Shown: in pieces, positions 1 through 64,000 of the stretch | Layout of the letters: every line of letters starts with the position of its first letter | Position numbering within the stretch: the stretch's first letter is position 1 | DNA from: Glycera tridactyla | Taxonomy: Eukaryota | Assembly (NCBI GenBank): GCA_965644265.1 | Contig: OZ286471.1 | Span: 46,748,001-46,812,000 of the forward strand | Length of the DNA: 64,000 nucleotides | Direction: 5' to 3' | Made by a program: the position numbers and the translations under genes | The notes under the pieces: generated by a model | What the model saw: only the letters and a program-made list of their open reading frames with translations | Told to the model about the DNA's origin: nothing | Databases searched by the model: none

Positions 1-24
1 ATCATCTGTGGGGAAACTGCGAAG
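1..24 (+). CDS. Repeat exon E0 (3' end only)
   Basis: Reads (D)HLWGNCE then G|GTATGA donor; truncated by window edge. Confidence 0.85.
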
Positions 25-3000
25 GTATGACATTCAACATGTAGAAGTCAAATTGGGGAAATGAAGTTGATGAGTTCAATCCCAACCGCAAGAGTTCGGC
101 CTTATCCATTTTAGCCATTGTCTTTTTGTAGATCATTTGTGGAACTTTTGAAAATTTTGAGGCCAGTTTTCTCTTGAGCATCCTCTACCTTTATCTCTAT
201 TTCTTTAGAACAGGTATTCCTGATTCAGCCACAGTTTGTTTTGTTCTCTCACTTAGCAGCCTCTCTACATTTTGGCATCTTCTGACATATGACAAGCTTT
301 TATGATATTCTGAAGTATTGTGGATAGATACTTGTTTGGAAGCATGATCGGTGATGCTGCTTCCACAATTGTAGCGGTTGTCTGTGGTCAACCACGGCCA
401 ACCACAGCACCACCTCAGACTACTACTAGAGATGACTGCTGGATCCCTACTACTGGAGGATCTGCGGGCTCCTCTTCAGTGTGTATCTTCCCATTCAGCT
501 ACAGGAATGTCAGATATACAGGCTGTTCCACTGTCGATAATAGTGGCTACCCATGGTGTTACACCTCGTACAACTATGAAAATGATCATCTTTGGGGCAA
601 TTGCCAAGGTTAGTTGTGAATGAGACCTATCTTTCCGAGCCTCCCAAGTGAAAACTATACGTTTCTCTTGAATTGTGGTCTTGTGCCGAGGATTGAATTG
701 TTCAATCGTGAAAAGATATGTACTGTAAGTTCAGATTCTTTATCCAATCACCTAGGTTTATTTGCTTCGACTGATCCTGCATTATTGGTGAATGGGAAAC
801 AATCTTTTTCTCATATCATGAATCCGGCAGAGGCTCTGCATGCCTTATATTCTACCGAGATAGGTGTGTGGTATTCTGACTGATATTCGACCAATTTTCA
901 GCGATGGTATGTGGCCAGCCCCGGCCGACAACCCAGGCTCCTGGGACAACAACCGGTCGGGACTGCTTTATCCCGACTACAGGAGGGTCAGCTGGAGGGC
1001 AATCCGTATGCATCTTTCCTTTCTCCTACAAAGACAGGACTTATAGTGGCTGTTCCACAGAGGATAATGGTGGAATTGCATGGTGTTATACTTCATACAA
1101 TTACAGGAACGACCACTTGTGGGGAAATTGCGGAGGTATGACTAAACAGAGACCTACGTTTTTATATTGAACAGTAGACTCACATTTTTTGGATGATACT
1201 TTTGCTGGGAGTTGGTTTTTTTGAGTTGTATTTCAATCTCGATTGCATCTCCCGGTGGGCATAATATGAGTTGTCCCAGTTTGAAGATTGTGTGTTTTCT
1301 GAGTGCCCAAGTGAAATTCACAACTGTAAAGATTTTTGATATTGTCCATGAGAATTTGTTTTCGTTGATACGACATCAACCATGTTCTTTTTAAAAAGAT
1401 ACATGTAACGGGAACGGATCTTCAGTCTGGTTGATGTGGGTATTGAAGCATCTTTATGCCATTCGAATTTGAATCTAGAGAAACATTTGGATATTGTTTG
1501 AATGATGATTGTCATATCAGAAACTAATTTGTTTCCTCAGCATTGAGATGTGGTGAGCCACGTCCAACAACTCCGGCTGTCAGGTCCACTACCCGAGAAG
1601 GCTGTTGGTACTCCACCTATGGTGGTACAGCAGGCCAAGCATCTAGCTGCATATTTCCCTTCTCTTATAAGAATGAGTTGTATGTATCCTGCTCCACTGC
1701 GGACAATGGAAATGTTCCCTGGTGCTATACATCATACAACTACGCTGAGGACCATCTCTGGGGCAATTGCGGAGGTAGGTCTCTACCTTGCATATTGAAC
1801 AAATATGAGTGAAATTCAGTCCCAGATTAAGCATTGCACCCATGATCAGCTAACAGCAGCACCGGGCTGGAATCATATTTGTACATCAACAATCACATAG
1901 ATGCATTCAACTATCGTCGAGATCTTGTCGGAAGTCATGGTGACAGTAGTCATCGTGGTTATGATGGTTGTTGATGTGGCAACGACTATGATGGCAGGTG
2001 GCATCGGTACTGGCTGCGGCAGTGCCAGTGATGATGGTGGTGATCATATGATTGCTGTTGGTGATGGTGGTGTTGATAGTGCTGCTGTCGGTGATGGTGG
2101 TGGAGGTGTTGGTTATGGTGATGGTCGTAGCTGCAGCAACAGTGATGATGATGGTGTTGGTGGTGGTAGTAGGGTTTGGAATTGAAAGTGGTGACGATGG
2201 TTCTTGTGCCTGTAGTGATGGTGAAGATTGGGTGGTAGGAGTAAGAATTTTGATGACCACCATTATCTTGCGGTGAAGGCATTCGGGCAAGACATTTACG
2301 ATAAGGAAGGCGGTGAGCTAGATAAGCTAACGTACATGCCCTGACATTGCAGCACTGGTCTGTGACCGACCACGGCCGGTCACTACCGGTACTGAAACAA
2401 CCACTCGCCAAGATTGTTGGATACCAACAGTTGGTGGTACAGCTGGTCAGCCATCAGTCTGCATCTTCCCATTCTCCTACAAAGGCAAAGAATACACCAG
2501 CTGCACAACTGAAGATAACCGCAATTATCCCTGGTGTTATACCTCCTACAACTACCAGAATGATCACTTGTGGGGAAATTGTGGAGGTATGTTTACCATG
2601 CCAGCAATCTGAACAATGGATTATCTCTCCTATTCCGAAAACAATTACATTCACCCACTGTTAGAACCAATATTTTGATGTCCATGTATTCAATAAATTA
2701 AGCCTCCTATTGGTGACCCAGGAGAAGATGTTTCGGAATAATCTCACCCATGCCCCTGCAATGACAGTCGCAATATAGCAAAAGTGCTTCAGACTAGATG
2801 GAGAATACCCGAACACCCAAACAAAATAAATATTTTTTGGCATCCTTTCATTTAAGAATGAGGGACAGTCTTACAATTCGAAGGGTGTGCCCCATGTTAC
2901 ATATGGTACCGCCTGAGCATCTCGAGCACTGCACCTGCACAAATATTCCAATGAAAAGAAAAATGTTATGCATTAATACTCGGGTATCCATTGAAGACTG

Positions 3001-6000
3001 ATCAGTCCTGGCATTTTCTGGAGAAAAATATTTCCCAGAAACCTAGATTCATGTGGTTCTTAATGACCTTAACTCTTCCACGGAATGGTCACACAACTAA
3101 GCTCTCAAAGTTCACAAACTCCTACTCGAGGCACAATATGTGGTTCTGGATTGTTTCTTTAGTGACTAATCCATTCTGCAGTAACTTCTGTCTGAGTAGG
3201 GGCAGTCATGAAGAGAAGCGGTTGAACAGTTTATGGATGTTTTCAGAGTTAGTTTGTGGGGAGCCACGGCCAACAACTCAGCCAACGCTCTCAACGACTG
3301 CTGGCAACTGCTTCATTCCAACCACTGGAGGTTCAGCTGGCCAATCATCCGTCTGCATCTTCCCTTTCACCTACAAGAATGTAATCTATACAGGATGTTC
3401 CACTGTTGATAACAGCGGCAGGGCATGGTGTTACACCTCTTATAACTATGCCAATGATCATCTGTGGGGTAATTGTGGAGGTATGTTCAAAGGATTCCTC
3501 TTTGGATGCCACTAACCTTCGAGAGGTAGAAGCAAGTAATAGCATCTGTTCAGAGAGTATCCCACTCAGACCTGTGCTGAACATATCTCCTCAGTTTTCA
3601 AAGTCACCTTCCAGTACGAGGCCTCCCATTAACGTCATGTCTTTGCTCAAATATGTGTGCAGCCACTGCTGACAAATTGAATTATCAAGATTGGTTTGGG
3701 CTACGCACCCTATATCCATGGGCATTTCTTGGTTCACTCATGCAATAATAGTTGTCCTTATAGGTGTCCGAGAATGGTTGTTCATCCGAGCAGAATTTCA
3801 TCATCTTGCCCAATTTCAGCGTTGGTCTGCGACCAGGAGCGACCAACTACGGCAGCACAGATGACCACAACACGTGGAGATTGCTGGATTCCTACCTATG
3901 GGGGTACAGCAGGCCAGTCAGTGTGTATCTTCCCTTTCACTTACCGGGATCGATCTTACACTGGCTGCTCTACCGTGGATAATGGTGGCTACCCATGGTG
4001 CTATACATCTTATGACTATAGGAATGACCATATGTGGGGCAACTGTCAAGGTACGCCACTAGGAGTTATCAAGATTGTAGTGCTCATATTTCTATTTCAC
4101 TCATCAGATGAATGAGGATGTACAGAAGTTCTCTCTTCTCGATGATGATGATGTGTGACAATAAATACTCCATGTGAGATCGTTCACTTGCATGGTCTAC
4201 ATTTGGTTTGGATTGCAAGATAAGAATGCGCGAGAAGATATCGTTTTCAAGAGTTTCAGTTAGGACTCAATTCTTACTTGTGTCCACCTAATAGCCATAC
4301 GCATCGTGATCACTCAGAATTACTCACCTGTAACCATTCATATGATTGTAATCAGATTGACATACACAGAGCCATCATGATGTTTGTATTACCATGCATG
4401 ATGATTTTCAGGAATGGTATGTGGACAGCCTAGACCAACAACTCCAGCAACAGGCACTACGACCAGGCGAGACTGTTACATTCCAACTAGTGGTGGTTCA
4501 GCCGGGCAGGCCTCTGTCTGTGTTTTCCCTTTCACTTACCGCGGTGTGACTTACAGCGGCTGCTCGACAGTAGACAATAGTGGATATCCGTGGTGTTATA
4601 CATCTTACAATTATGAAAATGATCATCTCTGGGGCAATTGTCTGGGTAGGTCAACCAATTCATGTATGACAATTTCAAAAAAGATGGCAGATTGAAATGG
4701 TCTTCGAAACTATCTTCAACTATGCACATATATCATTTTTTGGTATGAATCTCTTTTGGGGTCGACAGTGCAAATATTTCATCCTCCCGATTAATGTTGC
4801 GTTCATCAATCACAAAGATCTCATTCACCTGTAAGACCTTTCTTGGAAGAATCTAATGAGTATCCCTACCAATATAGAAATTGGAGGATCTGCCTATCAC
4901 ACGTAGCAGTTCCGTCTATACCCCCAACACTAGTCACCAGCCAGATGTTGATAGGTTCTTGGCTATAAATAAAGAAGTGCATTTGATATGCAGTTGACTT
5001 TGGCTATGACTATGATACCGGGCCTGAAATGATCAAATTTGTATCCTTGTAGGAGAGCACGTGATATTTGGGTTATTTTATTCAGATTTGATATGTGGTG
5101 GTGACCGTCCGACCACTCAACCTACAAGATCGACGACAAACCGAGACTGTTACATCCCAACAACTGGCGGCACTGCGGGTGACTCAGTCTGTACCTTCCC
5201 ATTCACATACAGGAATGTACAGTATACAGGCTGCTCCACTGTCGACAATAGCGGCTACCCCTGGTGTTATACGTCGTACAACTATAGGAATGATCATCTG
5301 TGGGGAAACTGTGGAGGTTTGTCACCCTGTCTCTGCTCTACATGACAGGAAAGGAACTGGAGCACCCCTCACCACACCTGATGTTGTGGTGTAGATGGCA
5401 TTGAGCTGTTCAATCAATGTCATTTCTGGTCAGATGATCTTGACCTTATTCTGCTACATTCTGATGCTGGTTTCTTGATAATAACAAGCCTGTCTTTTGG
5501 CAACAAGCTTGGTACAGAAGCAATGAATCGGAAATTTGTTATCCGATATCCATACATTAAGATGGTTAGTCATCACATCCTTTCCAGTTGACATGTAGGT
5601 GGATGTTTCGATTTATTTGGATGTAGCATGGCCTGCATTACATTGTCTCTTAATTGTGCTTGTCTGATTAGGTCAGTGCTGATAAAAATATCACTTCTCA
5701 TTAAGGTATCCAGGCCCATGATCATCATAGCAGACATATACCTCTGTTTTACTCTGTCATGAGCAGGGCTTGACTTTTGAAGCAGAGGGCTCTCCCTAAT
5801 TCAGAGTGAGTTTACATCATCTCTGCTGATATTTGCAGCGCTGGTATGTGGTAGGGATCGTCCCACCACTGTACCACCATCCACCACCACAGACTACGAC
5901 TGCTGGGTGCCGACATATGCTGGGACTGCGGGTCAGTCCTCCTGCATATTCCCATTCACCTACAGGGGAAAAGAATACACAGGATGTACCCGTGTAGATA

Positions 6001-9000
6001 ATGGTGGATACCCTTGGTGCTATACAAGCCCAGACTATGAGAATGATCACCTGTGGGGCATATGCCAAGGTAACGATTCAGTCTCTTACCCACTCGCATT
6101 TCTATCTTATCGTCAGGTACAACAAAGCCACATTATAAGCTGTTACTCATTTTCGCGATGGAATTCCGACTACTGCCCCCATCTCCTGTGAATCTCCAGG
6201 GAAAATTTCATCAAGAACTAGTACTGACGATCTCTATATATGTAGACATCTAATTTGCAGTGTTTAGATTGTGAAATATGAGCCACCATAATAAGACAAC
6301 AAATATAACTTTTTGATGAGCTATTTGTCGCTACAATTCAGGCTCACACATCACAGTCAGGAAACGTCATTTCAAGCCATGTGAATGCCCTAAGAAGCCG
6401 AACATTGTTTATAATCAATTAGAACTGATGTCATCAGTCATACATCTGTAAATGGCATCCAGCTTACTGGGACACTGTATCCACATCCTTTCCCTTGGAG
6501 GTTAGATTGGTCTTGAGTGTATTCCGAATTCAAGTTCTTCAGCATAATAATGCAGATTATCCATTGACCCAGTCATACATGCACACTCACACACATGCAC
6601 GCAGACCCATCCATCTTTCTTCTTAGTCAATATGTTCATCCATTCATTCATCATTCATGTATTGCTTGTTGATCTCCCTATAATCACGTCTATACACTCT
6701 GTATATCACTATTATCACCTATCGACCCTTTCTTTCATTCATCACGCTGGTCATCTTACCACCAATTGTCATATCCATCTCAGAGCCCATCCATTCCTCT
6801 AACAATATTTCAGAAGGTCTCCAAACAATTGACATATTGCATGGAGAAGGTAATAATGCAATGATCCATAGATCACCCTTCAGATACTCAGTTTAACACT
6901 CCATTAATGCAGATCCGACCTGCCTCCAAGACGATAGGTGACCCTCTAATCACCTTACAATGCTTGGCCTGACAAGTCACCTGTTGATGGTGTCATTTTT
7001 CAGATGTTGTATGTGGAGTACCACGACCTGAACGTGAAGGTCTTGGTACGACGACCAATAGTCGTTGTTGGATCCCAACTTATGCGGGTACAGCAGGCAA
7101 ATCCCTCTGTGTGTTTCCCTTCACCTACCGTGATAAAACCTATACAAGCTGCACCACGGTCGATAATGATGGTTACCCCTGGTGTTACACATCCTACAAT
7201 TATGCCAATGATCACTTATGGGGCATATGTCAAGGTACTTCTCATGACTCGTCGAACATGATTCATAATTGGAACAGTTACTATCCACCAGTCAGGTGTC
7301 TAGTTGCAGCTAAAATCACAAAAAATTCTGTAACAGAAACAGGGTCCCCATCCTTTTTTGATACGCTTGAAATGAAGAATATTCAATATGGGATTTGGCA
7401 AATGTTTTCTTCTGTTAGCTCAACTGAATAGCCTACTGGTACATTTTTTTCCTATATGGTAGACTGGATCACGAGACCAATGGGTGATAGCACCGCAGCA
7501 AACCGAATGAGCAGGATAACATGATATTATTCAATGCTTTCTGATCTCTGCCTCAGTTTTCTCAATGAATAATGAAGTAGAACAAAGTCGAATTCATGAA
7601 TATGACTTGATAATGACATATTGGAAAACCAGGAACCATGGCTTCCAAGAAACCACTTATCATATGGACCATTGGCTCATGTGCGAGCCATTTTCTCGCA
7701 AAATGTGAACTACCAGAATCTTTTCTTCATGCACAGTTTCATGAAGATATTTATTGAGAAAACTTTCAGCGACAGGTACTCGAACCTCTACTCAAGTATT
7801 TGATGCAGCTTTCACCAATTCTGGAAATTCCATGACCAAGTTGAGGTATACTCTGAAAATCATCCCATCATTACTTGTAAAGTACGGACAATGATATATT
7901 TTCTTATCAGTCACCACCTAATTTAACTGTTGATACTAAATTCTGCAGGCTGTTGTCAACTGTTGACCGATTGCCATAGCAGCGAAATCGGATTTTATCA
8001 TGATTTTTTCCTATCAAGGCCTGGCGCAATGCCAATACTGCATAACTTCACTTATGCTTGGTATCAGAATGTGCAACTTATTGAGCTTGACAATTTGGCA
8101 CTGGCACAATTTTAGTTCGGCAACATATCCTTCATAAAATCCATTTCTGTGGTAAAAATAAAGAAGTTTGAGCCTCAATTTCACACTAAAATGTGGATTG
8201 CAGAATTTCTAAGGCCAAATTGATATATAATTTCCATATATCATTTCATTCGCATGTATCGTATCTTGCTCTAATCTGACCCTTTGATATTTATTTCTGT
8301 GATCTGCTCAAACTGCATTAACGACTTGAGTATAGGTATTCAGTCGAAAATACTATTGATACAAAATACATCATGTTGATACCTGGGCAGCCTTGATTCT
8401 CTATCCAACGTTATTTGTAGATCTGGTTTGTGATGAACAACGGCCGACAACTGCACCTCTGGTGACGACCACAGGTCGTGATTGTTGGATCCGAGCAGTA
8501 GGGGGCACAGCCGTCGCCTCCTCCTGTATCTTTCCCTTCACATACCGGGGTGTTGTATACACTAGCTGTTCCACTGTCGATAACAATGATTATGCTTGGT
8601 GTTACACCTCCTACAACTATGCTAACGACCATTTGTGGGGGAACTGCCAAGGTACGGTGACACACAAATGCATTTCACATGGTGATCACTTACCAATGGT
8701 TGAGAAATAGAAATAAAATCAAGCACCAAGATATATCATGCTACTTATACGATCGTGAAATTTGCACGAAACTCGGCGAATGATAGGGTTATAGATCATG
8801 TTGGTCCTGAGCAGAGATGTTTCGATCATTATTGGTAAGATGCTTATCAGTTCATATCTCCGAGATGTCAGAAATTCCAGTTAATGGTTAGGGAAGGTGC
8901 AGTGGGAAAAAAGCTTTCGATTCTGATTAGTCGTGTGATTCACAATTGATATATGTGGTATTGGAGAATGGAAGAAAAATTTGATGTCATAGTATGAATT

Positions 9001-57000: not shown

Positions 57001-60000
57001 GGGTGCTCTCTATGATCTACTCAGATTCTCACTGCCTTATGCTCTATCCATGTGTATCATGTGAGATGTAGAAACTGATTATATGGCTGAAAATGAATCA
57101 TCCAAGTAATGTGGGCTTAGCGAGAGGAGCAGAGAGCACAATGCCTCAACACGAACCTCGAACAAACCCGGTATCTTTCATTGGGTAGCGATGATCCGCC
57201 AATGGTCACGGGCGATTGTTTGGCACGATGCAGGGATTCACTCAGCCCTGGGGATATGAGTTCCCAATCTCACCAATATTCCACATGATGATAGTTAATT
57301 CAAATCATACTTCCTACAGAGGAGTAATCAATTGTGCAGGCGCATTTGTGATGTCAGTCTTTACTGTCCGACAGACATGGTATGTGGGGAACCACGACCA
57401 ACGACTGCTTCGACATTGTCAACAACACGAAGTGACTGCTGGATCCCTACCACTGGTGGTACTGCGGGCTACCGTTCAGTCTGCACCTTCCCATTCAGCT
57501 ACAAAAATGTGGTTTACACTGGATGCTCCACCGTCGATAATAGCGGGAGGGCCTGGTGTTATACTTCATATGACTATGAGAATGATCATCTCTGGGGAAA
57601 TTGTGGAGGTATGTGTACACGCCTGTATGAAAATTACAGGATGTTGATCTGTGGAAAGTAGATTCATATTGATATGAAGTCCACAGTACTGAAGTTCTGC
57701 TGCTAACCAAATGGTGACCCCTAGCTGCCCAAATTCATGTGTATATCAAAAACTAGAAATGCATTTCTGCCTCAATCTGCCTCTTACAAAATCCTTCATT
57801 TGCTCAGCCAGCATTACAGAATGGAATTCTCCAAGTATGTATCATACAATCGGTCAAAATATTGTAGGCCAGCAGATTTTTTAATCTTGAAGAATCCGTC
57901 AAAAGATATTCGAAATGATATTATATTCCGTCGCACTGTGAGTGTACTCACTAGGTTTGACTGAACCTTGTTCTGTCCTTTCCTCAAACTAAATCACAAT
58001 CAGGGTAGGTCTTGTATCTTCAGTTCTGTAGTCTCTTTGATGAGGTGTGAATTGTCAGTGAAGGCTTATTGATGTATCAAATCTGTCTTGTAGCGCTTGT
58101 GTGTGGTGAGCCCCGGCCGACCACCCCGGCTACAGCTACAACCAGTAATAGGGACTGTTGGATCCCAACCATTGGGGGTACAGCCATCCAAAGATCAGTC
58201 TGTATCTTCCCATTCTCGTACAAGGATGTTGTCTACACTGGGTGCAGTGATGTCGATAATGGGGGTATCCCATGGTGTTACACCTCTTATGACTATAAAG
58301 ACGATCACCTGTGGGGAAACTGTGGAGGTATGTCCCTGAAATACGATGATAGATATTGATTGGGTGAAAGAAATGATTGAATTTCTATAGGTTAGAATAA
58401 TGCATTGGTGAACCATTTTGCCAACCCTGAGTGAGATTTTTCGGACAAGTGGCACTGAAAAATAGGTTTTACAGGATGTATGTACATTTATACATGTATT
58501 ATCTTCAATCGATACCCTGTCCTGTAAATTGAAACAAAGCTTGCTTCAGATTTCAGTTGAGCATTGAGCAGACTACAATTAGATACTTTGATAATACTGA
58601 TTACATTGATTCGCAGAGATGTTCTTCGTGATCCGTATATCTGTGTGCATCAAATATATATCTGGTACACAATGTCAGGACACTAATTCCACATAACTGA
58701 GCGAAATGTATGACAGAATCAATATAGCATCTTTTCTTTACTCGTCTATACGTTTCTCATATTTGGCACCTCATTGCACGTTGAGATTTTACGTATGGGA
58801 AGTTTGATCGTCTTTTGGCTTGATGATTCCTATCCTAAAAGATGGCGAATCCTTAGAGCTCGAACTTCAACCTGAAGGTTAAATAATCAGCCTGGTCTCG
58901 CTTTGCGATCTTCTATTTTACAGAGATAGTGTGTGGTGAACCACGCCCAACAACCGCATCCACCATGACGACCACTGCAAGTGACTGCTACATTCCTACG
59001 ATAGGTGGCACTGCAGGACAGCCATCTGTCTGCATTTTCCCTTTCAGCTACCGAGGTGTTGACTATACAGGATGCTCCACTGTGGATAACAGTGGATATC
59101 CTTGGTGTTATACCTCTTATGATTATCGAAATGACCATTTGTGGGGGAACTGTCAAGGTATGTCTTGATCCCATTATATCTACATCGTAGTCTTCGCCTC
59201 TAGTGATTGATGTATGCTGCAACATTCGATGCAATTCATCGAAGACTGACTCCTTCTGCTTCCCACCTCCTCCCTGTAGACAGATCCCTGACTTCACTAT
59301 CAGTATATTCTAAGAGAGGCATTGACACTGAGCTTTCCTTATGGGACATGATTGCCGGAAAGAATCGCTCGTCTAAGCCCCGCCTACTGTTTATCCGGCA
59401 TCGGTTGACCTCATGCATTAGATATTGCCAAGACCATTTGGCAGAGAATTAGCCTGGATCATGTAAGTATGCTTTGGAGTTGTCTCGTACCGAAATGTAG
59501 TTAATCACTTGTATTTGATGAATAATTTATATTCCATCTAGTGGCAGAATTTTTTGGAAAAATCCACTGATCTCCTACACCAGGTTCACACTCTCACGCC
59601 CTATGTATCATATTCAATACCTGTGACCATATCTCGCTTCCCTGTATTATTCCTTTTCCTAACCAGCCCAGAGTTGTAGTCTAACTATACATGGTCGTGA
59701 GTTCAGAACTAACCAGACATATGATCCTGATACTATGCTTCAATGTATTCATCACCGCTTCTTTTCCCTATTCACATATGAAGAAGCAAAGAGGTTCTGG
59801 TCTACCCTATCATCCTTTCCGATTTTTCACATGTGATGTGATACGTATCTCCTGAGAGCAGTGTTGATGTGCAAACTTCTTCTGCTAAGTTTAGATGCTT
59901 ATAGGTGGAGGTGCGCATATAGTTTGGTAAATTAATGAGTGCTGATGATATTGTGGAAAAGAGAAGAATAAGGAAAGTTCAGAGGAATAGGAGAAGAGAG

Positions 60001-62993
60001 ATATTCAGTGAGAGATAGNNNNNNNNNNNNNNNNNNNNNNNNNNNNNNNNNNNNNNNNNNNNNNNNNNNNNNNNNNNNNNNNNNNNNNNNNNNNNNNNNN
60101 NNNNNNNNNNNNNNNNNNNNNNNNNNNNNNNNNNNNNNNNNNNNNNNNNNNNNNNNNNNNNNNNNNNNNTTTTCGTACATGAGCGAGATGTATAAAGGGA
60201 CTGAGAAAGACAACCTCTAATTTTGATTCCTATCAAAGGAGTCAATCATTGCGATGATAACATGTGTTCTGATTGTCATTTCACTTTATCACAAATGCAG
60301 TGAACTTATCGAATATTCGCGATATGTGGGAATCTTATTTGGACAGACGAATCGCTAGCCGTATAATATGATGCAATCATACACTTATTTCCAGCTATGG
60401 TGTGTGGTCGAAACCGTCCACAGACTGTTGTGGCCCAGACAACAAGCAGCAGTAATTGCTGGGTGCCCACACTGGGTGGTACTGCGGGATCCCCATCTGT
60501 GTGTATCTTCCCCTTCTCTTACAAGGGCACGCTCTATGTTAGCTGTTCCAATGTGGATAACGGTGGTTATCCATGGTGTTATACATCATATGACTATGAG
60601 AATGATCATCTCTGGGGCAATTGCCAAGGTAACAGTGTGATTCTTAGTGTAGCCTCTCACACTAACATCTACTGTGAAACTAATTCAACCACATAGGATT
60701 AGATTAACAAATATATCCAACAGGTGCTTATTGTCGCACTCAGAATATATAACATAATGGATATAAATACTTATCCATTTCACGTTGGATTCTACTCACT
60801 AACGACGGACAGTGACTTATACTGGGCCAGCGAGAGTCCAGTCTAATCAATTCGACATGGATAATCGGTGACCTCCTAGTATATTAGGAATAGTTGAATT
60901 TGCATCCTCTCGGGCTTGAATTGCGCAATGGCTATGGCTTTCAACGATGTGCGGATCGTCTCATATTCAGGATGTTTGCTATAATATGAGATGAGTCATG
61001 GAGGTGTCCAGTGGAACAGAATTTCTTCATGTCATTGGTAGCACTGTTATTTCCTTGCCTTCAGATATGCTTGGCAGAGTGAATGGATGCATGTTACATA
61101 TACCAGAGTCACATATGAGAGAATATTGGAGTATTCATGTTTGTGACAATGAAGACTGTGGGCATTTGGTACTGACGTTAGCAGTTTGTGCTATTGCAGT
61201 CAATATATAGTTAAGTAGATGGCCGTACTGATATTCATGTCCTCACTGATTGTGAAGTTTGATATCATACTTGTAGCGATGGTGTGCGACCAGCCACGCC
61301 CTACCACCATCCCTGTCAAAACCACAACAGCTAGTGACTGTTGGATTCCAACAGTTGGTGGCACTGCTGGGCAGACATCCGTATGCATCTTCCCATTCTC
61401 CTATAAGGGTGTGACTTACACCGGATGTTCCACTGAGGATAATGGTGGTTACCCCTGGTGCTATACATCTTATAACTACAGAGATGATCACCTCTGGGGC
61501 AACTGTCAAGGTATGTCGCCATTCAGGAGGGATGAAACGCAGGGCAAGCTTGTCACTACATGTGGAATACTTGTCAGTACACGCTTCATACCGATATCGA
61601 TAAGATATCTGATACTGAATTAATCTCGAAAGAGACTAGCTAATATAGAATCATGGTACTTGGATACACCCTACATCAGCTCGTGGCAATCGTTTGTACA
61701 CACACCCATATTTCATATTCTTTGCGATTAAAATGCCTGAACAGGCTTGGCAGTTTGCTCTCATTCGAAACACTTTACTTTCAACTCCTCAGGAGGACAA
61801 CCATACCTTCATCACTTCCAGTGCAAGCATTCACAATACAGTACATGGATGCAAAGAACAAGGCGGACATGACAGCATACATTCAAGCATTTCCCTCATA
61901 GCAGTATTGTAGATCATCAAGAAATCCTCCATGCATCAGACGTTTGACACAGAATAATTATTTTGTGGTCAATTTTCATGTACTAAGCCGTAGCGACCGC
62001 ATCATAAGACCATAGAAATGCATGATGTGGGTTGTAATTCCCTGATGGCATGTTTACAGCAATGGTATGTGATCAGCCCCGTCCAACCACACAGGCACCT
62101 ATCACTACCACCAACAGTGACTGTTATATCCCAACATATGGTGGGACAGCTGGTAGCTCGATCTGTATTTTCCCATTCGAGTACAGAAATGTACGATACA
62201 CTGGCTGTTCGACGGTGGATAATGGCGAGATACCTTGGTGCTACACCTCAGTATATTATAATACTGACCATCTCTGGGGAAATTGTTATGGTATGTTCCA
62301 TCTGACTGAAACACTACAGAGAAATGCTGAGAAGCACTCACTGTCAATGGATAGTATATTTGTATCCTCCATCTGATCCCACATGGATTCCTTCATTGAT
62401 CTATATGAATATTGAGATGTGCGTCAGATGTCTATTTGATCAACTTCGCTCTACATGAGTGCTCAATTTCATACTGTTACATGGAGAGGAATCATTTGTT
62501 TATCACTAGAAATTAGGCATTCATATTTGATCTTGATATCATCTTTGATAAGGATGGCATTGTGTGTTTTCATTTTCCTCATTGGAAATATATACCAGCC
62601 CTAGGCTACAGGCAGGGCTAGCTAATACCAGGAGCACAATATACACCATTACTGGAAACACCAATACATTACTTTCAGTAATTTGGATCGCTTCATTGTC
62701 CATTGTCAATCACGCTTATGGCTTAGTGTAATCACAGTTTCATGCCAATATTGGGTATTTTCCAGAGGTCATATGTGATGGCAAACAGCCACGGACCTTT
62801 GGGACAACGACTGGTAGAGACTGTTGGGTACCAACTGTAGGGGGTACTGCAGGTGCTGCTTCTGTCTGCATCTTCCCTTTCTCATACCGTGACGTGCAAT
62901 ACACCAGTTGTAGTACTGTGGATAATGGTGGCTATCCTTGGTGTTATACTTCGTACAACTACAGAGAAGACCATCTCTGGGGCAACTGCCAAG
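1..62993 (+). CDS. Internal portion of a giant multi-exon gene encoding at least 82 tandem FN2/kringle-like modules with Thr-rich linkers (probably secreted/extracellular; 5' and 3' ends outside window)
   Basis: 81 complete exons plus 1 partial exon, all with AG/GT at equivalent positions, all phase 1-1, lengths divisible by 3, no in-frame stops. Conserved FN2 signature CxFPFxY...YxxC...WC...WxxC in every unit. A single constitutively spliced product is inferred, not observed. Confidence 0.85.
375..608 (+). CDS. Repeat exon E1 (FN2/kringle-like module)
   Basis: AG..GT, 234 bp; begins AVVCGQPRPTTAPPQTTTRDDCW. Confidence 0.92.
902..1135 (+). CDS. Repeat exon E2
   Basis: AG..GT, 234 bp; AMVCGQPRPTTQAPGTTTGRDCF. 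Confidence 0.92.
1541..1774 (+). CDS. Repeat exon E3
   Basis: AG..GT, 234 bp; ALRCGEPRPTTPAVRSTTREGCWYS (divergent). Confidence 0.92.
1938..2240. repeat. Cryptic (GAT/GGT)n trinucleotide low-complexity tract in intron E3-E4
   Basis: Runs such as gatgatggtggtgat and ggtgatggtggtgttgat; source of spurious His- and Thr-rich antisense ORFs. Confidence 0.8.
2353..2586 (+). CDS. Repeat exon E4
   Basis: AG..GT, 234 bp; ALVCDRPRPVTTGTETTTRQDCW (correct frame missing from ORF track; translated by hand, open). Confidence 0.92.
3247..3480 (+). CDS. Repeat exon E5
   Basis: AG..GT, 234 bp; ELVCGEPRPTTQPTLSTTAGNCF. Confidence 0.92.
3820..4050 (+). CDS. Repeat exon E6
   Basis: AG..GT, 231 bp; ALVCDQERPTTAAQMTTTRGDCW. 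Confidence 0.92.
4412..4645 (+). CDS. Repeat exon E7
   Basis: AG..GT, 234 bp; GMVCGQPRPTTPATGTTTRRDCY. Confidence 0.92.
5086..5316 (+). CDS. Repeat exon E8
   Basis: AG..GT, 231 bp; DLICGGDRPTTQPTRSTTNRDCY. Confidence 0.92.
5839..6069 (+). CDS. Repeat exon E9
   Basis: AG..GT, 231 bp; ALVCGRDRPTTVPPSTTTDYDCW. Confidence 0.92.
6575..6800. repeat. (CA)n / (CATC, CATT)n low-complexity tract
   Basis: cacactcacacacatgcac, ccatccatc, cattcattcatcattca. Confidence 0.6.
7004..7234 (+). CDS. Repeat exon E10
   Basis: AG..GT, 231 bp; DVVCGVPRPEREGLGTTTNSRCW. Confidence 0.92.
8421..8651 (+). CDS. Repeat exon E11
   Basis: AG..GT, 231 bp; DLVCDEQRPTTAPLVTTTGRDCW. Confidence 0.92.
9624..9854 (+). CDS. 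Repeat exon E12
   Basis: AG..GT, 231 bp; ELVCDQPRPTTEPTKTTTGADCF. Confidence 0.92.
9900..10085. repeat. (GT)n / (GATT, GAGT)n low-complexity tract
   Basis: gtgggtgtgtgtgg, gattgattgattgat, gagtgagtgtg. Confidence 0.6.
10269..10499 (+). CDS. Repeat exon E13
   Basis: AG..GT, 231 bp; GLICGRDRPTTASTLQTTDRDCW. Confidence 0.92.
10777..10956 (+). mobile_element. Dispersed 180-bp repeat, copy 1 (SINE-like 3' end with (CAAA)n tail)
   Basis: Colinear similarity to 26423-26602 (tctgaact, acttcca.ttgacaa, cagggtt.gtga, gtctgcag, tgaccag, ggcatac, tgggttgata, caaacaaacaaaac). Confidence 0.65.
11074..11304 (+). CDS. Repeat exon E14
   Basis: AG..GT, 231 bp; ALVCGEPRPTTHLPGTTTRDDCY. Confidence 0.92.
12864..13097 (+). 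CDS. Repeat exon E15
   Basis: AG..GT, 234 bp; ELVCGRPRPTTSAPQTTTLGDCW. Confidence 0.92.
   Translation, partial: NWYVVVLDQPPQLHRQPLWVIVGFRHLVAQPDRPLCVHCPSATGVWSIQDAHRSIMEAYPGVTHPTTMKATICGETV
13570..13803 (+). CDS. Repeat exon E16
   Basis: AG..GT, 234 bp; DVVCGEPRPTTASTLTTTPRDCY (hand-translated, open). Confidence 0.92.
14208..14441 (+). CDS. Repeat exon E17
   Basis: AG..GT, 234 bp; ELICGQARPTTASTVATTGSDCW. Confidence 0.92.
14968..15201 (+). CDS. Repeat exon E18
   Basis: AG..GT, 234 bp; ALVCGLPRPTTAATMTTTGRDCW; ends C|GTAAGT. Confidence 0.9.
15489..15719 (+). CDS. Repeat exon E19
   Basis: AG..GT, 231 bp; xMVCGQPRPTTASTLTTTPNDCW. Confidence 0.92.
16048..16281 (+). CDS. Repeat exon E20
   Basis: AG..GT, 234 bp; ALVCGQPRPITQPTGTTTSNNCW. 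Confidence 0.92.
16510..16560. repeat. (TA)n(GT)n microsatellite
   Basis: tatatatatacgtgtgtgtgagtctgtgtctgcgtgtgtgtg. Confidence 0.7.
16640..16873 (+). CDS. Repeat exon E21
   Basis: AG..GT, 234 bp; DLVCGEPRPTTAVTMTTTGRDCF. Confidence 0.92.
17310..17388. mobile_element. Short internally deleted MITE (TA-CAGT terminus, Tc1/mariner-pogo-like)
   Basis: Left end tacagtcaaatctgcctatagaggcca, right end ggtggtctctcgatcaggttcgact; both ends match 29374-29534 in inverted orientation. Confidence 0.55.
17481..17711 (+). CDS. Repeat exon E22
   Basis: AG..GT, 231 bp; ALVCGRQRPTTSGIPRTIGTDCF. Confidence 0.92.
18061..18291 (+). CDS. Repeat exon E23
   Basis: AG..GT, 231 bp; EEVCNEPRPTTPASATTTGSDCW. Confidence 0.92.
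18629..18862 (+). CDS. Repeat exon E24
   Basis: AG..GT, 234 bp; EMVCGEPRPTTLSTMTTTQGDCF. Confidence 0.92.
18916..19199 (+). repeat. Local direct tandem duplication in intron E24-E25 (about 132 bp + 148 bp copies)
   Basis: Both copies share aatgtggt...ttaatgcaaccaactgattga, tttgcttctttgatggggcgcctaa and gacctcaaactgcagttttcttgagatattcgtcat. Confidence 0.9.
19464..19697 (+). CDS. Repeat exon E25
   Basis: AG..GT, 234 bp; ALICGQPRPTTASVLTTTGGECW. Confidence 0.92.
20299..20532 (+). CDS. Repeat exon E26
   Basis: AG..GT, 234 bp; VLVCDEPRPVTRSGSTTTSSDCW. Confidence 0.92.
20973..21206 (+). CDS. Repeat exon E27
   Basis: AG..GT, 234 bp; DLVCGEPRPTTGSTLSTTPSDCF. Confidence 0.92.
21560..21793 (+). CDS. 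Repeat exon E28
   Basis: AG..GT, 234 bp; ELICGRDRPTTASTLSTTGRDCW. Confidence 0.92.
22297..22530 (+). CDS. Repeat exon E29
   Basis: AG..GT, 234 bp; ALVCDEPRPSTASTLSTTDSDCW. Confidence 0.92.
22769..23002 (+). CDS. Repeat exon E30
   Basis: AG..GT, 234 bp; ELVCGEPRPTTASTLTTTPGDCY. Confidence 0.92.
23169..24429. mobile_element. About 1.26 kb non-autonomous DNA transposon with long degenerate TIRs
   Basis: TA|agggtccggg ... cctgggccct|TA ends; exact inverted 12-mer gacgtcagctca (23354-23365) / tgagctgacgtc (24254-24265); further inverted matches (tgagaaaa, cca.tattc); sits in the longest intron. Confidence 0.55.
24588..24818 (+). CDS. Repeat exon E31
   Basis: AG..GT, 231 bp; ALVCGGQRPTTASTLTTTGRDCW. 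Confidence 0.92.
25227..25457 (+). CDS. Repeat exon E32
   Basis: AG..GT, 231 bp; AMVCGEPRPTTASTLSTTASNCW. Confidence 0.92.
25855..26088 (+). CDS. Repeat exon E33
   Basis: AG..GT, 234 bp; ELVCDQPRPITREIKTTTPDDCY. Confidence 0.92.
26423..26602 (+). mobile_element. Dispersed 180-bp repeat, copy 2 (SINE-like)
   Basis: Colinear similarity to 10777-10956 including the (CAAA)n tail. Confidence 0.65.
26790..27020 (+). CDS. Repeat exon E34
   Basis: AG..GT, 231 bp; ELVCGRERPTTMSTLTTTPDNCY. Confidence 0.92.
27359..27592 (+). CDS. Repeat exon E35
   Basis: AG..GT, 234 bp; ELVCGGDRPTTASTQTTTPGDCW (hand-translated, open). Confidence 0.92.
27959..28192 (+). CDS. Repeat exon E36
   Basis: AG..GT, 234 bp; GLVCGRARPSTASTLTTTQNNCW. 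Confidence 0.92.
28557..28790 (+). CDS. Repeat exon E37
   Basis: AG..GT, 234 bp; ALVCDEPRPTTSAPMTTTQADCW. Confidence 0.92.
28850..29112 (+). mobile_element. DINE-1/HINE-like (Helentron-associated) non-autonomous element
   Basis: Starts tttatacccc; 5' hairpin acccccgtccaaa/tttggaagggggt (28857-28887, 12/13 match); then GGTT/GTCY-type microsatellite ending tctgtccg. Family call rests on architecture only. Confidence 0.5.
29374..29534. mobile_element. About 160-bp MITE, same family as 17310-17388
   Basis: Left end gtcaaacctgctcgagagaccatct matches the reverse complement of 17361-17385; right end ggtggcctttatagacaggtgggctata. Confidence 0.55.
29876..30109 (+). CDS. Repeat exon E38
   Basis: AG..GT, 234 bp; ALVCGEPRPTTMSTLTTTGSDCW. 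Confidence 0.92.
30343..30576 (+). CDS. Repeat exon E39
   Basis: AG..GT, 234 bp; ALVCGEPRPTTASTLTTTGRDCW. Confidence 0.92.
30888..31121 (+). CDS. Repeat exon E40
   Basis: AG..GT, 234 bp; AMICGEARPTTMSTLTTTEGNCW. Confidence 0.92.
31476..31709 (+). CDS. Repeat exon E41
   Basis: AG..GT, 234 bp; EIICDEPRRVTSSTLTTTPADCY. Confidence 0.92.
32101..32334 (+). CDS. Repeat exon E42
   Basis: AG..GT, 234 bp; GMVCGRARPTTASTLTTTPSDCW. Confidence 0.92.
32919..33152 (+). CDS. Repeat exon E43
   Basis: AG..GT, 234 bp; ELVCGEPRPTTMSSLTTTQADCW. Confidence 0.92.
33642..33875 (+). CDS. Repeat exon E44
   Basis: AG..GT, 234 bp; AIVCGKDRPTTASTLSTTPDDCW. Confidence 0.92.
34336..34569 (+). CDS. Repeat exon E45
   Basis: AG..GT, 234 bp; ALVCGQPRPTTASTLTTTASDCY. 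Confidence 0.92.
34964..35197 (+). CDS. Repeat exon E46
   Basis: AG..GT, 234 bp; ELTCGRNRPTTASTLTTTGSNCW. Confidence 0.92.
35501..35734 (+). CDS. Repeat exon E47
   Basis: AG..GT, 234 bp; AMVCDAPRPITEKPMTTTARDCW. Confidence 0.92.
36672..36905 (+). CDS. Repeat exon E48
   Basis: AG..GT, 234 bp; DLVCGEPRPTTASTLTTTGSDCW. Confidence 0.92.
37312..37545 (+). CDS. Repeat exon E49
   Basis: AG..GT, 234 bp; AMVCGEPRPTTASVQTTTGSDCW. Confidence 0.92.
38219..38452 (+). CDS. Repeat exon E50
   Basis: AG..GT, 234 bp; EMVCGQARPTTMSTLSTTGSDCW. Confidence 0.92.
39138..39371 (+). CDS. Repeat exon E51
   Basis: AG..GT, 234 bp; ELVCGEPRPTTGSTLTTTPSGCW. Confidence 0.92.
39747..39980 (+). CDS. Repeat exon E52
   Basis: AG..GT, 234 bp; EMVCGRARPSTASTLSTTADDCW. 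Confidence 0.92.
40372..40605 (+). CDS. Repeat exon E53
   Basis: AG..GT, 234 bp; ALVCGEPRPTTGSTLSTTPRDCW. Confidence 0.92.
40959..41192 (+). CDS. Repeat exon E54
   Basis: AG..GT, 234 bp; ALVCGEPRPTTASTLTTTGSDCW. Confidence 0.92.
41509..41742 (+). CDS. Repeat exon E55
   Basis: AG..GT, 234 bp; ELVCGQPRPTTGSTLTTTGSDCW. Confidence 0.92.
42187..42420 (+). CDS. Repeat exon E56
   Basis: AG..GT, 234 bp; GLVCGKNRPTTESTLSTTAEDCW. Confidence 0.92.
42670..42903 (+). CDS. Repeat exon E57
   Basis: AG..GT, 234 bp; VLVCGEPRPTTAATKTTTGSDCW; only unit with DRLW instead of DH(L/I/M)W. Confidence 0.92.
43000..43100. repeat. ACAG-based tandem repeat with 12-bp period (acagtcaaatag)
   Basis: acagtcaaatagacag repeated; reads as QTDSQIDS in the intronic read-through ORF. 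Confidence 0.85.
43193..43426 (+). CDS. Repeat exon E58
   Basis: AG..GT, 234 bp; GLVCGEPRPTTMSTLTTTGSDCW. Confidence 0.92.
43845..44078 (+). CDS. Repeat exon E59
   Basis: AG..GT, 234 bp; EMVCGEPRPTTGSTLTTTPNDCW. Confidence 0.92.
44534..44767 (+). CDS. Repeat exon E60
   Basis: AG..GT, 234 bp; DLVCGEPRPTTATTETTTPGNCY. Confidence 0.92.
45118..45351 (+). CDS. Repeat exon E61
   Basis: AG..GT, 234 bp; VMVCNKQRPTTASTLTTTGSDCY. Confidence 0.92.
45761..45994 (+). CDS. Repeat exon E62
   Basis: AG..GT, 234 bp; GLVCGGDRPTTASTLTTTGQDCW. Confidence 0.92.
46368..46601 (+). CDS. Repeat exon E63
   Basis: AG..GT, 234 bp; ELVCGEPRPTTGSTLTTTGRNCW. Confidence 0.92.
46921..47154 (+). CDS. Repeat exon E64
   Basis: AG..GT, 234 bp; AMVCGEPRPITVTPQTTTPDDCW. 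Confidence 0.92.
47657..47890 (+). CDS. Repeat exon E65
   Basis: AG..GT, 234 bp; AMVCGQPRPTTAPTGTTTGSDCW. Confidence 0.92.
48237..48470 (+). CDS. Repeat exon E66
   Basis: AG..GT, 234 bp; ALVCGQPRPTTASTLTTTGSQCF. Confidence 0.92.
49289..49522 (+). CDS. Repeat exon E67
   Basis: AG..GT, 234 bp; ELTCGRERPTTASTLTTTARDCW. Confidence 0.92.
49895..49915. repeat. Poly-C tract
   Basis: ccccccacccccccccccccc. Confidence 0.9.
50616..50849 (+). CDS. Repeat exon E68
   Basis: AG..GT, 234 bp; DLVCGEPRPTTMSTAATTASDCW. Confidence 0.92.
51938..52171 (+). CDS. Repeat exon E69
   Basis: AG..GT, 234 bp; DLVCGRERPTTMSTLTTTPSDCF. Confidence 0.92.
52979..53212 (+). CDS. Repeat exon E70
   Basis: AG..GT, 234 bp; AMVCGQPRPTTDATETTTGSDCW. 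Confidence 0.92.
53668..53901 (+). CDS. Repeat exon E71
   Basis: AG..GT, 234 bp; ELVCGQPRPTTASSVSTTAGNCW. Confidence 0.92.
54378..54611 (+). CDS. Repeat exon E72
   Basis: AG..GT, 234 bp; ALICGEPRPTTGSTLTTTGSDCF. Confidence 0.92.
55241..55474 (+). CDS. Repeat exon E73
   Basis: AG..GT, 234 bp; EVVCGQDRPTTASTLTTTGSDCW. Confidence 0.92.
56716..56949 (+). CDS. Repeat exon E74
   Basis: AG..GT, 234 bp; ELVCGQPRPTTMASATTSNSGCW. Confidence 0.92.
57375..57608 (+). CDS. Repeat exon E75
   Basis: AG..GT, 234 bp; DMVCGEPRPTTASTLSTTRSDCW. Confidence 0.92.
58094..58327 (+). CDS. Repeat exon E76
   Basis: AG..GT, 234 bp; ALVCGEPRPTTPATATTSNRDCW. Confidence 0.92.
58924..59157 (+). CDS. Repeat exon E77
   Basis: AG..GT, 234 bp; EIVCGEPRPTTASTMTTTASDCY. 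Confidence 0.92.
60019..60169. other. Assembly gap (151 N)
   Basis: Run of N in intron E77-E78, preceded by an AG-rich low-complexity flank. Confidence 0.98.
60395..60628 (+). CDS. Repeat exon E78
   Basis: AG..GT, 234 bp; AMVCGRNRPQTVVAQTTSSSNCW. Confidence 0.92.
61277..61510 (+). CDS. Repeat exon E79
   Basis: AG..GT, 234 bp; AMVCDQPRPTTIPVKTTTASDCW. Confidence 0.92.
62060..62290 (+). CDS. Repeat exon E80
   Basis: AG..GT, 231 bp; AMVCDQPRPTTQAPITTTNSDCY. Confidence 0.92.
62766..62993 (+). CDS. Repeat exon E81 (linker 2 aa shorter)
   Basis: AG..GT, 228 bp; EVICDGKQPRTFGTTTGRDCWVPTVGG...DHLWGNCQ; + strand frame absent from ORF track, hand-translated, open. Confidence 0.9.
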
Positions 62994-64000
62994 GTTGGTT
63001 TTCACTAGGCTCAGTCACCCTTGATAAATCAGTGCAGTTCAGGAAAGAAAATCATACACACCGTTGAACAGATTTAGCTGTTCATACTTTTATGTGTGCT
63101 TGATTTTGAGCAAAGAACATATTTCCTCTTCGCTTGAATTGAACAGACAGGTCTACGTAGCCGATGTGTAATTATTTCTGGCATGTTCAGTGTGACATGT
63201 ACCACGGCATCAATAAAGATCGGAAGGGATGCTTCAACCAGGACATTGCTAACGGAATCGTAAAATCTCCATCTGCAATTATTGACAGAGGACATCTCAC
63301 AACACAATAATGCTTATCACTCCTGTGTGCCAACAGAACAAACCTACATGATGAAGCAGTTAATTCACACCATATCAAACATATTATACGGATAATCTGC
63401 ACTGTGATCTTGGGGAACCACCAGCTTGTTCAGACCAATATACTATTGAGTATATTTCAAGAAATGCAAATGGCGTACTGTACAAATAGCAGCATACATC
63501 TAGCTAATGGAAATTGACCAAAGATTGCCAACAATGTGATCTGAAGAGGTATTGAATATAGCACAATCGTGTATACTAGGAGTCCGGGATACATTTATCA
63601 TCGTTCTTATACAATCAGACGATGAAAAAGTTAATATGAATATCCAGCTACGGTGAAATGGAGGGAAAAACTACAAATCTCAGCACATGGCATACCAACT
63701 ATCACAAATTTGCAGTAACAGCTTTCCATCACATGAAAGTCTACTCAGCCTGCATACACTGGATTTCTATACATAAGATGGGTGCGATGTTGAGCAATGA
63801 TAACAGGACATCAACAAAGCAGACATAACCTGGACATGTATCAGTGAGGATCCATTCCATGCCAAGATGCTTTTGGTTGGCTGTATTGAACACATAGTGG
63901 TGGCTATGAAATTAAGCACATATTAGCTATTCTAGAATATGTTACTTGATATATGTGACAATTCTGCTAATATCCAATATCGCATCACGAACCTCATCAT

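Follow-up and report, generated by a model that had tools for sequence, protein, structure and literature searches.

An array of six-cysteine FN2 modules in Glycera tridactyla whose outer disulfide probably joins consecutive exons

FN2 modules are textbook four-Cys, two-disulfide domains, and in vertebrates each is encoded by one symmetric phase 1-1 exon that ends about where the module ends. Kringles, from which FN2 has been argued to descend since 1984, mainly on the basis of vertebrate proteins, have six Cys spaced at about x20, x28, x10-11, x11-12 and x4, and the kringle IV modules of apolipoprotein(a) (LPA) form a very long tandem array, with Ser/Thr/Pro-rich linkers, that grew by exon-block duplication. 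Kringle and FN2 share one kringle-like fold superfamily in SCOP (PMC8373733), and Ozhogina et al. 2001, a paper cited in PMC6211748 and PMC8373733, names the neurotrypsin kringle in its title as a potential link between the two. Here we describe a stretch of 64,000 nucleotides (nt) from Glycera tridactyla (assembly GCA_965644265.1, contig OZ286471.1, positions 46,748,001 to 46,812,000, forward strand; hereafter the window), which carries a long array of exons, each coding for one FN2 module with six invariant Cys in place of four. We propose, with a probability of roughly three in four, that the two additional Cys of each module close it from the outside, the second Cys of exon n (the 'DC' Cys) bonding the first Cys of exon n+1 (the 'VC' Cys), which lies five residues past the last core Cys.

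Scanning for the motif, running tblastn and inspecting the splice sites, we identified 81 complete units on the plus strand of the window, together with the tail of one more. The complete units form a series of phase 1-1 exons (375-62993, plus strand), all preceded by AG and followed by GT, all of a length divisible by three (234 nt in 65 exons, 231 nt in 15 and 228 nt in one), and all beginning with the last two bases of a codon and ending with the first base of another, which is G in 80 of the 81. Together they encode 6301 residues and are separated by introns of 233-1585 nt (median 442). Every exon has the same layout: it opens with x-L-V-C, continues through a Pro/Thr-rich spacer of typically 17 residues, (D)C-[WYF] and an N-terminal strand (IPT.GGTA), and finishes with an FN2 core ending in NC-(Q/G). 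The spacer between the first two Cys is mucin-like in composition (a Pro/Thr/Ser, or PTS, linker), with Thr, Ser and Pro making up 52% of 1375 residues and Thr alone 31%. Comparison of random exon pairs gave proportions of synonymous and non-synonymous differences (pS and pN) of 0.79 and 0.20, a pN/pS of 0.26, the ratio rising from 0.20 in the FN2 core to 0.28 near the second Cys and 0.36 in the spacer. The exons are under purifying selection, and since pS between them is far above pN the units must be old and selected rather than the product of a recent inert amplification.

An earlier interpretation, made from the letters alone (the sequence-only reading), had remarked that the units hold six Cys where FN2 has four, and exactly six were indeed found in 81 of 81 exons. 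Their spacings within the exon are 17, 14, 13, 10 and 14 residues in 65 exons, 17, 13, 13, 10 and 14 in 15, and 15, 14, 13, 10 and 14 in one, so that the core pattern C-x13-C-x10-C-x14-C occurs in all 81 and the x10 interval that had been singled out is invariant; a C.[FY]P[FY]-type motif is present in 80 and replaced by CTLPF in one. The same reading had explained the apparent Gly after NC-(Q/G) as read-through into the intron, which proved correct, the codon consisting of one exon G and the intron GT. Once spliced, 80 of 80 junctions read C-x4-C, most commonly C-Q-[A/E]-L-V-C, as it had also predicted for its fifth and sixth Cys. Two of its generalisations had to be narrowed. It had seen DCW, DCY or DCF in every unit; the residue following the second Cys is aromatic in all 81 (W in 58, Y in 13, F in 10), but Asp precedes that Cys in only 64, with N, G, R, E or Q in the others. 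Similarly its consensus PWCYT is exact in 59 of the 81 exons, the remainder having AWCYT, PWCYV and similar forms.

By sequence the module is FN2. In Pfam searches with three exons the fn2 family (PF00040) was matched at 48.8-49.3 bits against a cut-off of 22.2 (E about 5e-13), exon residues 37-77 covering profile positions 1-42 of 42, and the Kringle family (PF00051) gave no match at E values up to 10. A single exon searched against the PDB sequences retrieved 32 chains, all of them FN2-containing, with MMP-9 as the best match (6.5e-22) and MMP-2 and fibronectin also present; no kringle was found in this search. The alignments with the MMPs run through I-P-T-V-G-G-T-A, which makes this segment an ordinary N-terminal FN2 strand with the extra Cys placed two residues before it. 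FN2 is defined by exactly two disulfides, 1-3 and 2-4, and it is here, in the number of Cys, that the module departs from the family of which it is a variant: the four core Cys presumably keep both usual bonds, and two more Cys make up an additional pair. In the full texts that we searched, a set outside which most subscription-journal papers fall, we found no account of a third disulfide in FN2, which is weak evidence of novelty; on that footing the six-Cys class appears to be undescribed.

The gene is not alone in this. A profile built from 28 exons was compared with 1.84 billion representative proteins and gave 2626 matches at E <= 0.001, of which the 150 best were listed; 48 of these 150 are six-Cys FN2 arrays, made up for the most part of FN2 cores flanked by a Cys at either end. 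Among invertebrates the six-Cys variant of FN2 is widespread, and the gene in the window is a spectacular example of it, not a unique invention. In P0002, P0021, P0047, P0051, P0079, P0083, P0133 and P0136 the FN2 core is bracketed by an N-terminal and a C-terminal Cys as in the window, and many of the unnamed six-Cys arrays of other animals also share its Thr/Pro-rich linkers between beads; they differ from it in having the C-terminal extra Cys at x1, x3 or x7 and only 3-14 units. For P0133, the Atlas cluster that lies closest takes its name from a Hydra vulgaris protein. One uninterrupted open reading frame (ORF), P0002 (L003:1001-5659, on a 1.09-Mb contig of the ENA metagenome assembly ERZ22147071), spans 4659 nt; its first FN2 has four Cys, and 13 six-Cys FN2 units come after it, the linkers being long and Pro/Thr/Ser/Lys-rich and every core being followed by C-x7-C. 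The product as called has no signal peptide and so may be incomplete; the reading frame has no introns and the proposed outer bond would therefore not span exons there, unlike in the window.

Closer relatives were found among public contigs, where single-exon ORFs such as P0038 and P0039 are up to 91% identical to individual exons of the window, this highest value being that of P0038 (assembly GCA_013332675.1, contig L002) with the exon at 33642-33875. In the same assembly, from a close relative, P0070 (L001:268-789) is a paralogue in the form of a continuous two-unit ORF, with no intron between the units: in the DNA the first unit begins after ...cag| as in the window, and the second ends G|GTAAAT. 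Its intron-free junction between the units reads C-L-D-K-V-C, followed by an x15 spacer and the next Cys before the strand. Since C-x4-C is present in a junction that was never spliced it must be a feature of the protein and not an artefact of our splicing, and P0070 records the loss or gain of an intron exactly at the position that the proposed bond would span. A homologue search started from P0070 returned only three distant proteins with PAN and FN2 domains, which have four-Cys FN2 and were uninformative. As a separate observation on the family, P0017, P0032, P0099, P0128, P0078 and P0011 are FN2 arrays in which each unit has just a single additional Cys, or else a Cys-Cys doublet takes the place of the first core Cys, suggesting that FN2 holds several further undescribed disulfide variants.

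The fold was modelled on P0070 (residues 15-120) with AlphaFold2 (AF2), using a 98-row alignment (A2) in which all Cys columns are aligned; without an alignment the mean predicted local distance difference test score (pLDDT) was 29 and the model was unusable. With it the cores reached a pLDDT above 90 and both spacers stayed below 50. Comparison with solved FN2 structures (Foldseek, VIA-align), in which two two-stranded sheets stand perpendicular to each other, gave Z of 9-10 and a root-mean-square deviation (rmsd) of 0.9-1.1 Å over 56-59 aligned residues, and because the match extends from model residues 23/24 to 80/82 the canonical FN2 fold would reach both extra Cys, which are residues 22 and 83.

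How these extra Cys are paired can be asked at particular places only, since the two pairing models to be compared are identical inside a uniform array and differ at array ends and at transitions between types of unit. In the first, which we favour, the DC Cys of exon n bonds the VC Cys of exon n+1. In the second the VC and DC Cys of the same exon form a bond with one another that makes a glycosylated loop of the 17-residue Thr-rich spacer and leaves the FN2 domains as ordinary four-Cys modules on a very short effective tether. For every run of at least three six-Cys units among the relatives we therefore counted Cys over the 24 residues that precede the first core and the 12 that follow the last one. 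There were 32 such runs, 31 of them independent, given that P0002 and P0155 are near-duplicates, and the count was (1,1) in 19 and (0,0) in 1, which argues against the loop; most of the remaining runs gave (3,1) or (2,1), where the surplus Cys belong to a signal peptide or to a truncated unit just before the run. Some proteins that have a lone Cys near their start and another at or near their end also argue against a bond within the linker. P0021, P0083, P0133, P0136 and P0027 have a signal-peptide-like N terminus, then one Cys and then the cores, and P0018 has a single Cys before its first core even though it lacks such an N terminus; the last Cys is the end of the protein in P0018 and P0083, lies 4-7 residues from the end in P0021, P0027 and P0133, and is followed by a long Thr-rich tail in P0136.

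The transition between unit types in P0002 points the same way, because its four-Cys first unit is followed by a linker with a single Cys, then come 12 linkers with two, and one Cys stands after the last core. The residues separating the two linker Cys were also counted in 124 linkers of the relatives and range from 2 (C-x2-C) to 86, with a median of 12; such a spread is that of a free interdomain linker and is untypical of a structural loop. What speaks for the loop is that both Cys lie in one exon at an almost invariant x17 spacing in the window, that excising the C...C segment leaves C-Q-A-L-V / W-I-P-T-V-G-G-T-A, which resembles the junctions between modules in MMP-2, and that neither extra Cys was confidently placed by AF2. 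Weighing these points we consider the loop unlikely, and the pairing across the exon junction that the sequence-only reading had put forward remains the best-supported connectivity on flank parity, lone terminal Cys, the P0002 linker and the variable linker spacing. If it is right then that reading's other claim, that the boundaries of structural unit and exon do not coincide, follows and we agree with it.

A further alternative is that the extra Cys are free, or that they form bonds between chains or between beads that turn the protein into a cross-linked gel or fibre, in the manner of polymerising mucins. The very large, mucin-like character of the protein would suit this, and AF2 offered no confident bond within the domain. 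Yet both extra Cys are kept in 81 of 81 units at fixed distances from the FN2 core, small secreted three-unit proteins share the bracketed arrangement, and hundreds of free thiols would be unusual in a secreted protein, all of which makes this explanation very improbable.

Several observations nevertheless count against the bond between consecutive exons. Parity was measured in the arrays of relatives, the ends of this gene's own array lying outside the window, and among those relatives P0058 shows (0,0) and P0017, P0128 and P0032 have one extra Cys per unit. The structural model is that of P0070, the closest continuous two-unit relative, which is about 45% identical to the units of the window, and in it the pLDDT of the extra Cys is only 50-70. 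No spliced multi-unit product of this gene was among the 150 best matches listed, and transcript evidence of the predicted splicing was not found. Two other lines were left out of the weighing. Tracking of the N-terminal against the C-terminal extra-Cys offset across lineages, which paired antiparallel ends should show, gave a Spearman rho of 0.29 (p 0.03) with unreliable anchoring and is not relied on, and covariation of the DC neighbourhood with the junction residues was set aside because duplication of exon blocks produces correlations without contact. Our literature searches did not turn up a statement that the N and C termini of FN2 modules lie close together.

Whether the module deserves to be called an FN2/kringle hybrid is a different matter. 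On the hybrid-or-INTERMEDIATE question it is FN2 by every significant test, with a small signal towards kringle. The sequence-only reading had described a kringle-type outer disulfide on an FN2 core, a structural intermediate; these terms overstate the case, as Pfam matches fn2 only, the significant PDB matches are FN2 only and the predicted fold is FN2. The fold search that it had suggested came out likewise, at a Z of about 10 for FN2 against 2.1-2.3 for kringle in the model of the relative, and the label fits poorly with a six-Cys FN2 that is common in other animals (48 of the 150 best matches) and whose extra Cys change position by lineage.

The small signal comes from three sources. Profile A2, searched against the PDB, finds after the FN2 chains only kringles (9 sequences, E 0.055-4.2), and the best of them, the neurotrypsin kringle (2k4r, E 0.055), matches the core of the profile (positions 55-90) and not the extra Cys; a four-Cys control profile (A3, 42 FN2 units) finds two kringles at E of about 1 among unrelated chains and does not find the neurotrypsin kringle. 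None of these E values, with A2 or A3, is significant. Next, a scan of 48,161 chains that was independent of Foldseek left 22 at Z >= 2, of which 20 contain FN2 and 2 hold prothrombin kringle 2, making kringles the only folds other than FN2 at this level. Prothrombin kringle 2 was superposed at Z 2.3 (model 19-82 on chain 177-247) and plasminogen kringle 2 at a Z of 2.1 (model 17-80 on chain -4 to 77), with rmsd of 3.3-3.9 Å, and these weak superpositions put model residue 82 on prothrombin 247 and model residue 80 on residue 77 of the plasminogen kringle. Taking the fifth and sixth kringle Cys to be, in the usual numbering, Cys243 and Cys248 in prothrombin and Cys75 and Cys80 in the plasminogen kringle, the last core Cys would fall on kringle Cys5 and, by extension, the C-terminal extra Cys on kringle Cys6, an agreement that is weak and indirect. 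Lastly C5-x4-C6, the x10 interval and PWCYT match kringle motifs.

These similarities could mean that the module is a true intermediate, with an outer bond homologous to kringle Cys1-Cys80 that was kept from a kringle/FN2 ancestor and lost in the four-Cys FN2 of vertebrates. The sequence and structural matches to kringles just given, which A2 collects exclusively beyond FN2 and A3 only amid noise, are what this idea would predict, but all of the sequence matches fall below significance, Z does not exceed 2.1-2.3 and Pfam Kringle is not matched. Of the kringle spacings only x10 and x4 agree with those observed (x13/14, x13, x10, x14, x4), and the long Cys2-Cys3 segment of kringles is absent, being x13 here. 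Moreover the C-terminal extra Cys stands at x1, x3, x4 or x7 depending on the lineage, and the N-terminal one also moves, suggesting repeated gain or drift. Finally the phase-1 intron between Cys5 and Cys6 sits where an ordinary FN2 would end, judged by vertebrate boundaries, which fits the addition of two Cys to the linker part of a standard FN2 exon. We regard common descent of the two outer bonds as doubtful.

The individual exons, all on the plus strand, are located as follows. Exons 1-10 occupy 375-608, 902-1135, 1541-1774, 2353-2586, 3247-3480, 3820-4050, 4412-4645, 5086-5316, 5839-6069 and 7004-7234, and exons 11-20 occupy 8421-8651, 9624-9854, 10269-10499, 11074-11304, 12864-13097, 13570-13803, 14208-14441, 14968-15201, 15489-15719 and 16048-16281. 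They are followed by exons 21-30 at 16640-16873, 17481-17711, 18061-18291, 18629-18862, 19464-19697, 20299-20532, 20973-21206, 21560-21793, 22297-22530 and 22769-23002, and by exons 31-40 at 24588-24818, 25227-25457, 25855-26088, 26790-27020, 27359-27592, 27959-28192, 28557-28790, 29876-30109, 30343-30576 and 30888-31121. Exons 41-50 lie at 31476-31709, 32101-32334, 32919-33152, 33642-33875, 34336-34569, 34964-35197, 35501-35734, 36672-36905, 37312-37545 and 38219-38452, exons 51-60 at 39138-39371, 39747-39980, 40372-40605, 40959-41192, 41509-41742, 42187-42420, 42670-42903, 43193-43426, 43845-44078 and 44534-44767, and exons 61-70 at 45118-45351, 45761-45994, 46368-46601, 46921-47154, 47657-47890, 48237-48470, 49289-49522, 50616-50849, 51938-52171 and 52979-53212. 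The series closes with exons 71-81 at 53668-53901, 54378-54611, 55241-55474, 56716-56949, 57375-57608, 58094-58327, 58924-59157, 60395-60628, 61277-61510, 62060-62290 and 62766-62993.

A strict regular expression recovers 80 of these units and misses the exon at 12864-13097 (plus strand), which has CTLPF instead of C.FPF and is otherwise intact, with 6 Cys and AG/GT. The exon at 14968-15201 (plus strand) is the sole one with C as its final base, turning the junction codon into Pro while C-x4-C is retained. As representatives we took, on the plus strand, exon 53 (40372-40605), whose FN2 core would on the favoured pairing be closed by the first Cys of the next exon, exon 54 (40959-41192), which served as query in searching Pfam, the PDB and the Atlas and is row 1 of alignment A1, and exon 55 (41509-41742). 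The final exon of the window (62766-62993, plus strand) is the most divergent, with 228 nt and a spacer of 15 residues against 17. Upstream, tblastn detected the 3' end of one more such exon (1-23, plus strand; last seven codons at 3-23, tail ...HLWGNCE), meaning that the window opens inside another exon of the array and that the gene continues upstream; no FN2-like sequence was found in the 1007 bases after the last exon (62994-64000).

An assembly gap (N run 60019-60169) lies within the 1237-nt intron at 59158-60394 (plus strand). Both exons flanking it (58924-59157 and 60395-60628) are undamaged, keep canonical sites and are in phase 1, and tblastn found no partial FN2 coding adjoining the gap. 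Because it is inside an intron between phase-1 exons, and all exons are phase 1-1, the reading frame does not depend on what the gap contains, which may include a whole exon. No large ORFs pointing to transposons or other genes were found in the introns, where tandem repeats do occur: a 12-mer, ACAGACAGTCAA, in 7.7 copies (43002-43096), a 30-mer in 2.4 copies (2032-2102) and a 39-mer in 1.9 copies (9992-10067). Both strands of the region 1900-2400 have long His/Thr-rich ORFs, which seem to be repeat artefacts and not genes. Most exons have Q (36) or G (27) as their final complete codon, and exons of the Q and G types tend to take turns along the array, in step with other differences in the spacer, a pattern that fits a duplication unit of two exons.

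We think it likely, then, that the window lies inside a giant gene coding for a secreted protein of the beads-on-a-string type, and that the array extends past at least the upstream edge of the window. Each 78-residue exon would supply the last Cys of the previous bead (in x-L-V-C), a 17-residue spacer and one FN2, the Pro/Thr/Ser-rich spacers being short, extended and probably O-glycosylated. The predicted bond between DC(n) and VC(n+1) would clasp both ends of the FN2 bead in the topological position of kringle Cys1-Cys80, so that each bead would be locked by three disulfides. As all exons are phase 1-1 and start with x-L-V-C, any joint between two exons regenerates C-x4-C, and duplication, loss or skipping of exons would for that reason leave the internal beads clasped. 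Such an array would have a structural unit that is systematically offset from the exon and is nonetheless robust to exon duplication or skipping, and it carries a warning for annotation, namely that the Pfam fn2 boundaries cut off two Cys that are probably structural. Characterised FN2 modules bind collagen or gelatin through an exposed aromatic cluster (PMC4635314). That cluster is conserved in the units of the window, and by analogy a multivalent role in matrix, mucus, adhesive or collagen-like binding is a natural guess. The six-Cys FN2 class as a whole, of which this gene is an extreme example, would make it possible to ask whether the outer bond of kringles is an ancestral feature or arose several times.

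Set beside the FN2 modules of MMP-2, MMP-9, fibronectin and the mannose-receptor family, the units of the window have the same core Cys spacing (x13, x10, x14), the same FPF..Y...W-C core and the same T.GG strand, and like vertebrate FN2 they are encoded one module per symmetric phase 1-1 exon. They differ from the characterised modules in two added invariant Cys, which stand immediately ahead of the N-terminal strand and, at the other end, five residues beyond the last core Cys, in the Pro/Thr-rich spacers between modules, and in number, with at least 82 modules in a row against 1-3. With the kringles of plasminogen (K4), prothrombin (K2) and neurotrypsin they share six Cys, C5-x4-C6, C3-x10-C4 and PWC(Y/F)T, and, if the favoured pairing holds, an outer 1-6 bond around nested 2-4 and 3-5 bonds; the unit of the window is nevertheless shorter, spanning about 62 residues between its outermost Cys where kringles span about 80, and with x13 against about x28 between C2 and C3, and its sixth Cys is encoded on the next exon. 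The array resembles that of apolipoprotein(a) as a long tandem series of modules of kringle-like fold with Ser/Thr/Pro-rich linkers. Apolipoprotein(a) differs in consisting of true kringles encoded by two exons each, in being restricted to primates and in ending in a protease domain, and the comparison implies no homology beyond the fold superfamily. Should six-Cys FN2 modules have kept an ancestral outer disulfide, which we hold to be improbable though worth stating, they would be the living and long-sought link between kringle and FN2, and the gene in the window, its clasp re-formed across every splice junction, would be an independent and far larger counterpart of the apolipoprotein(a) array.

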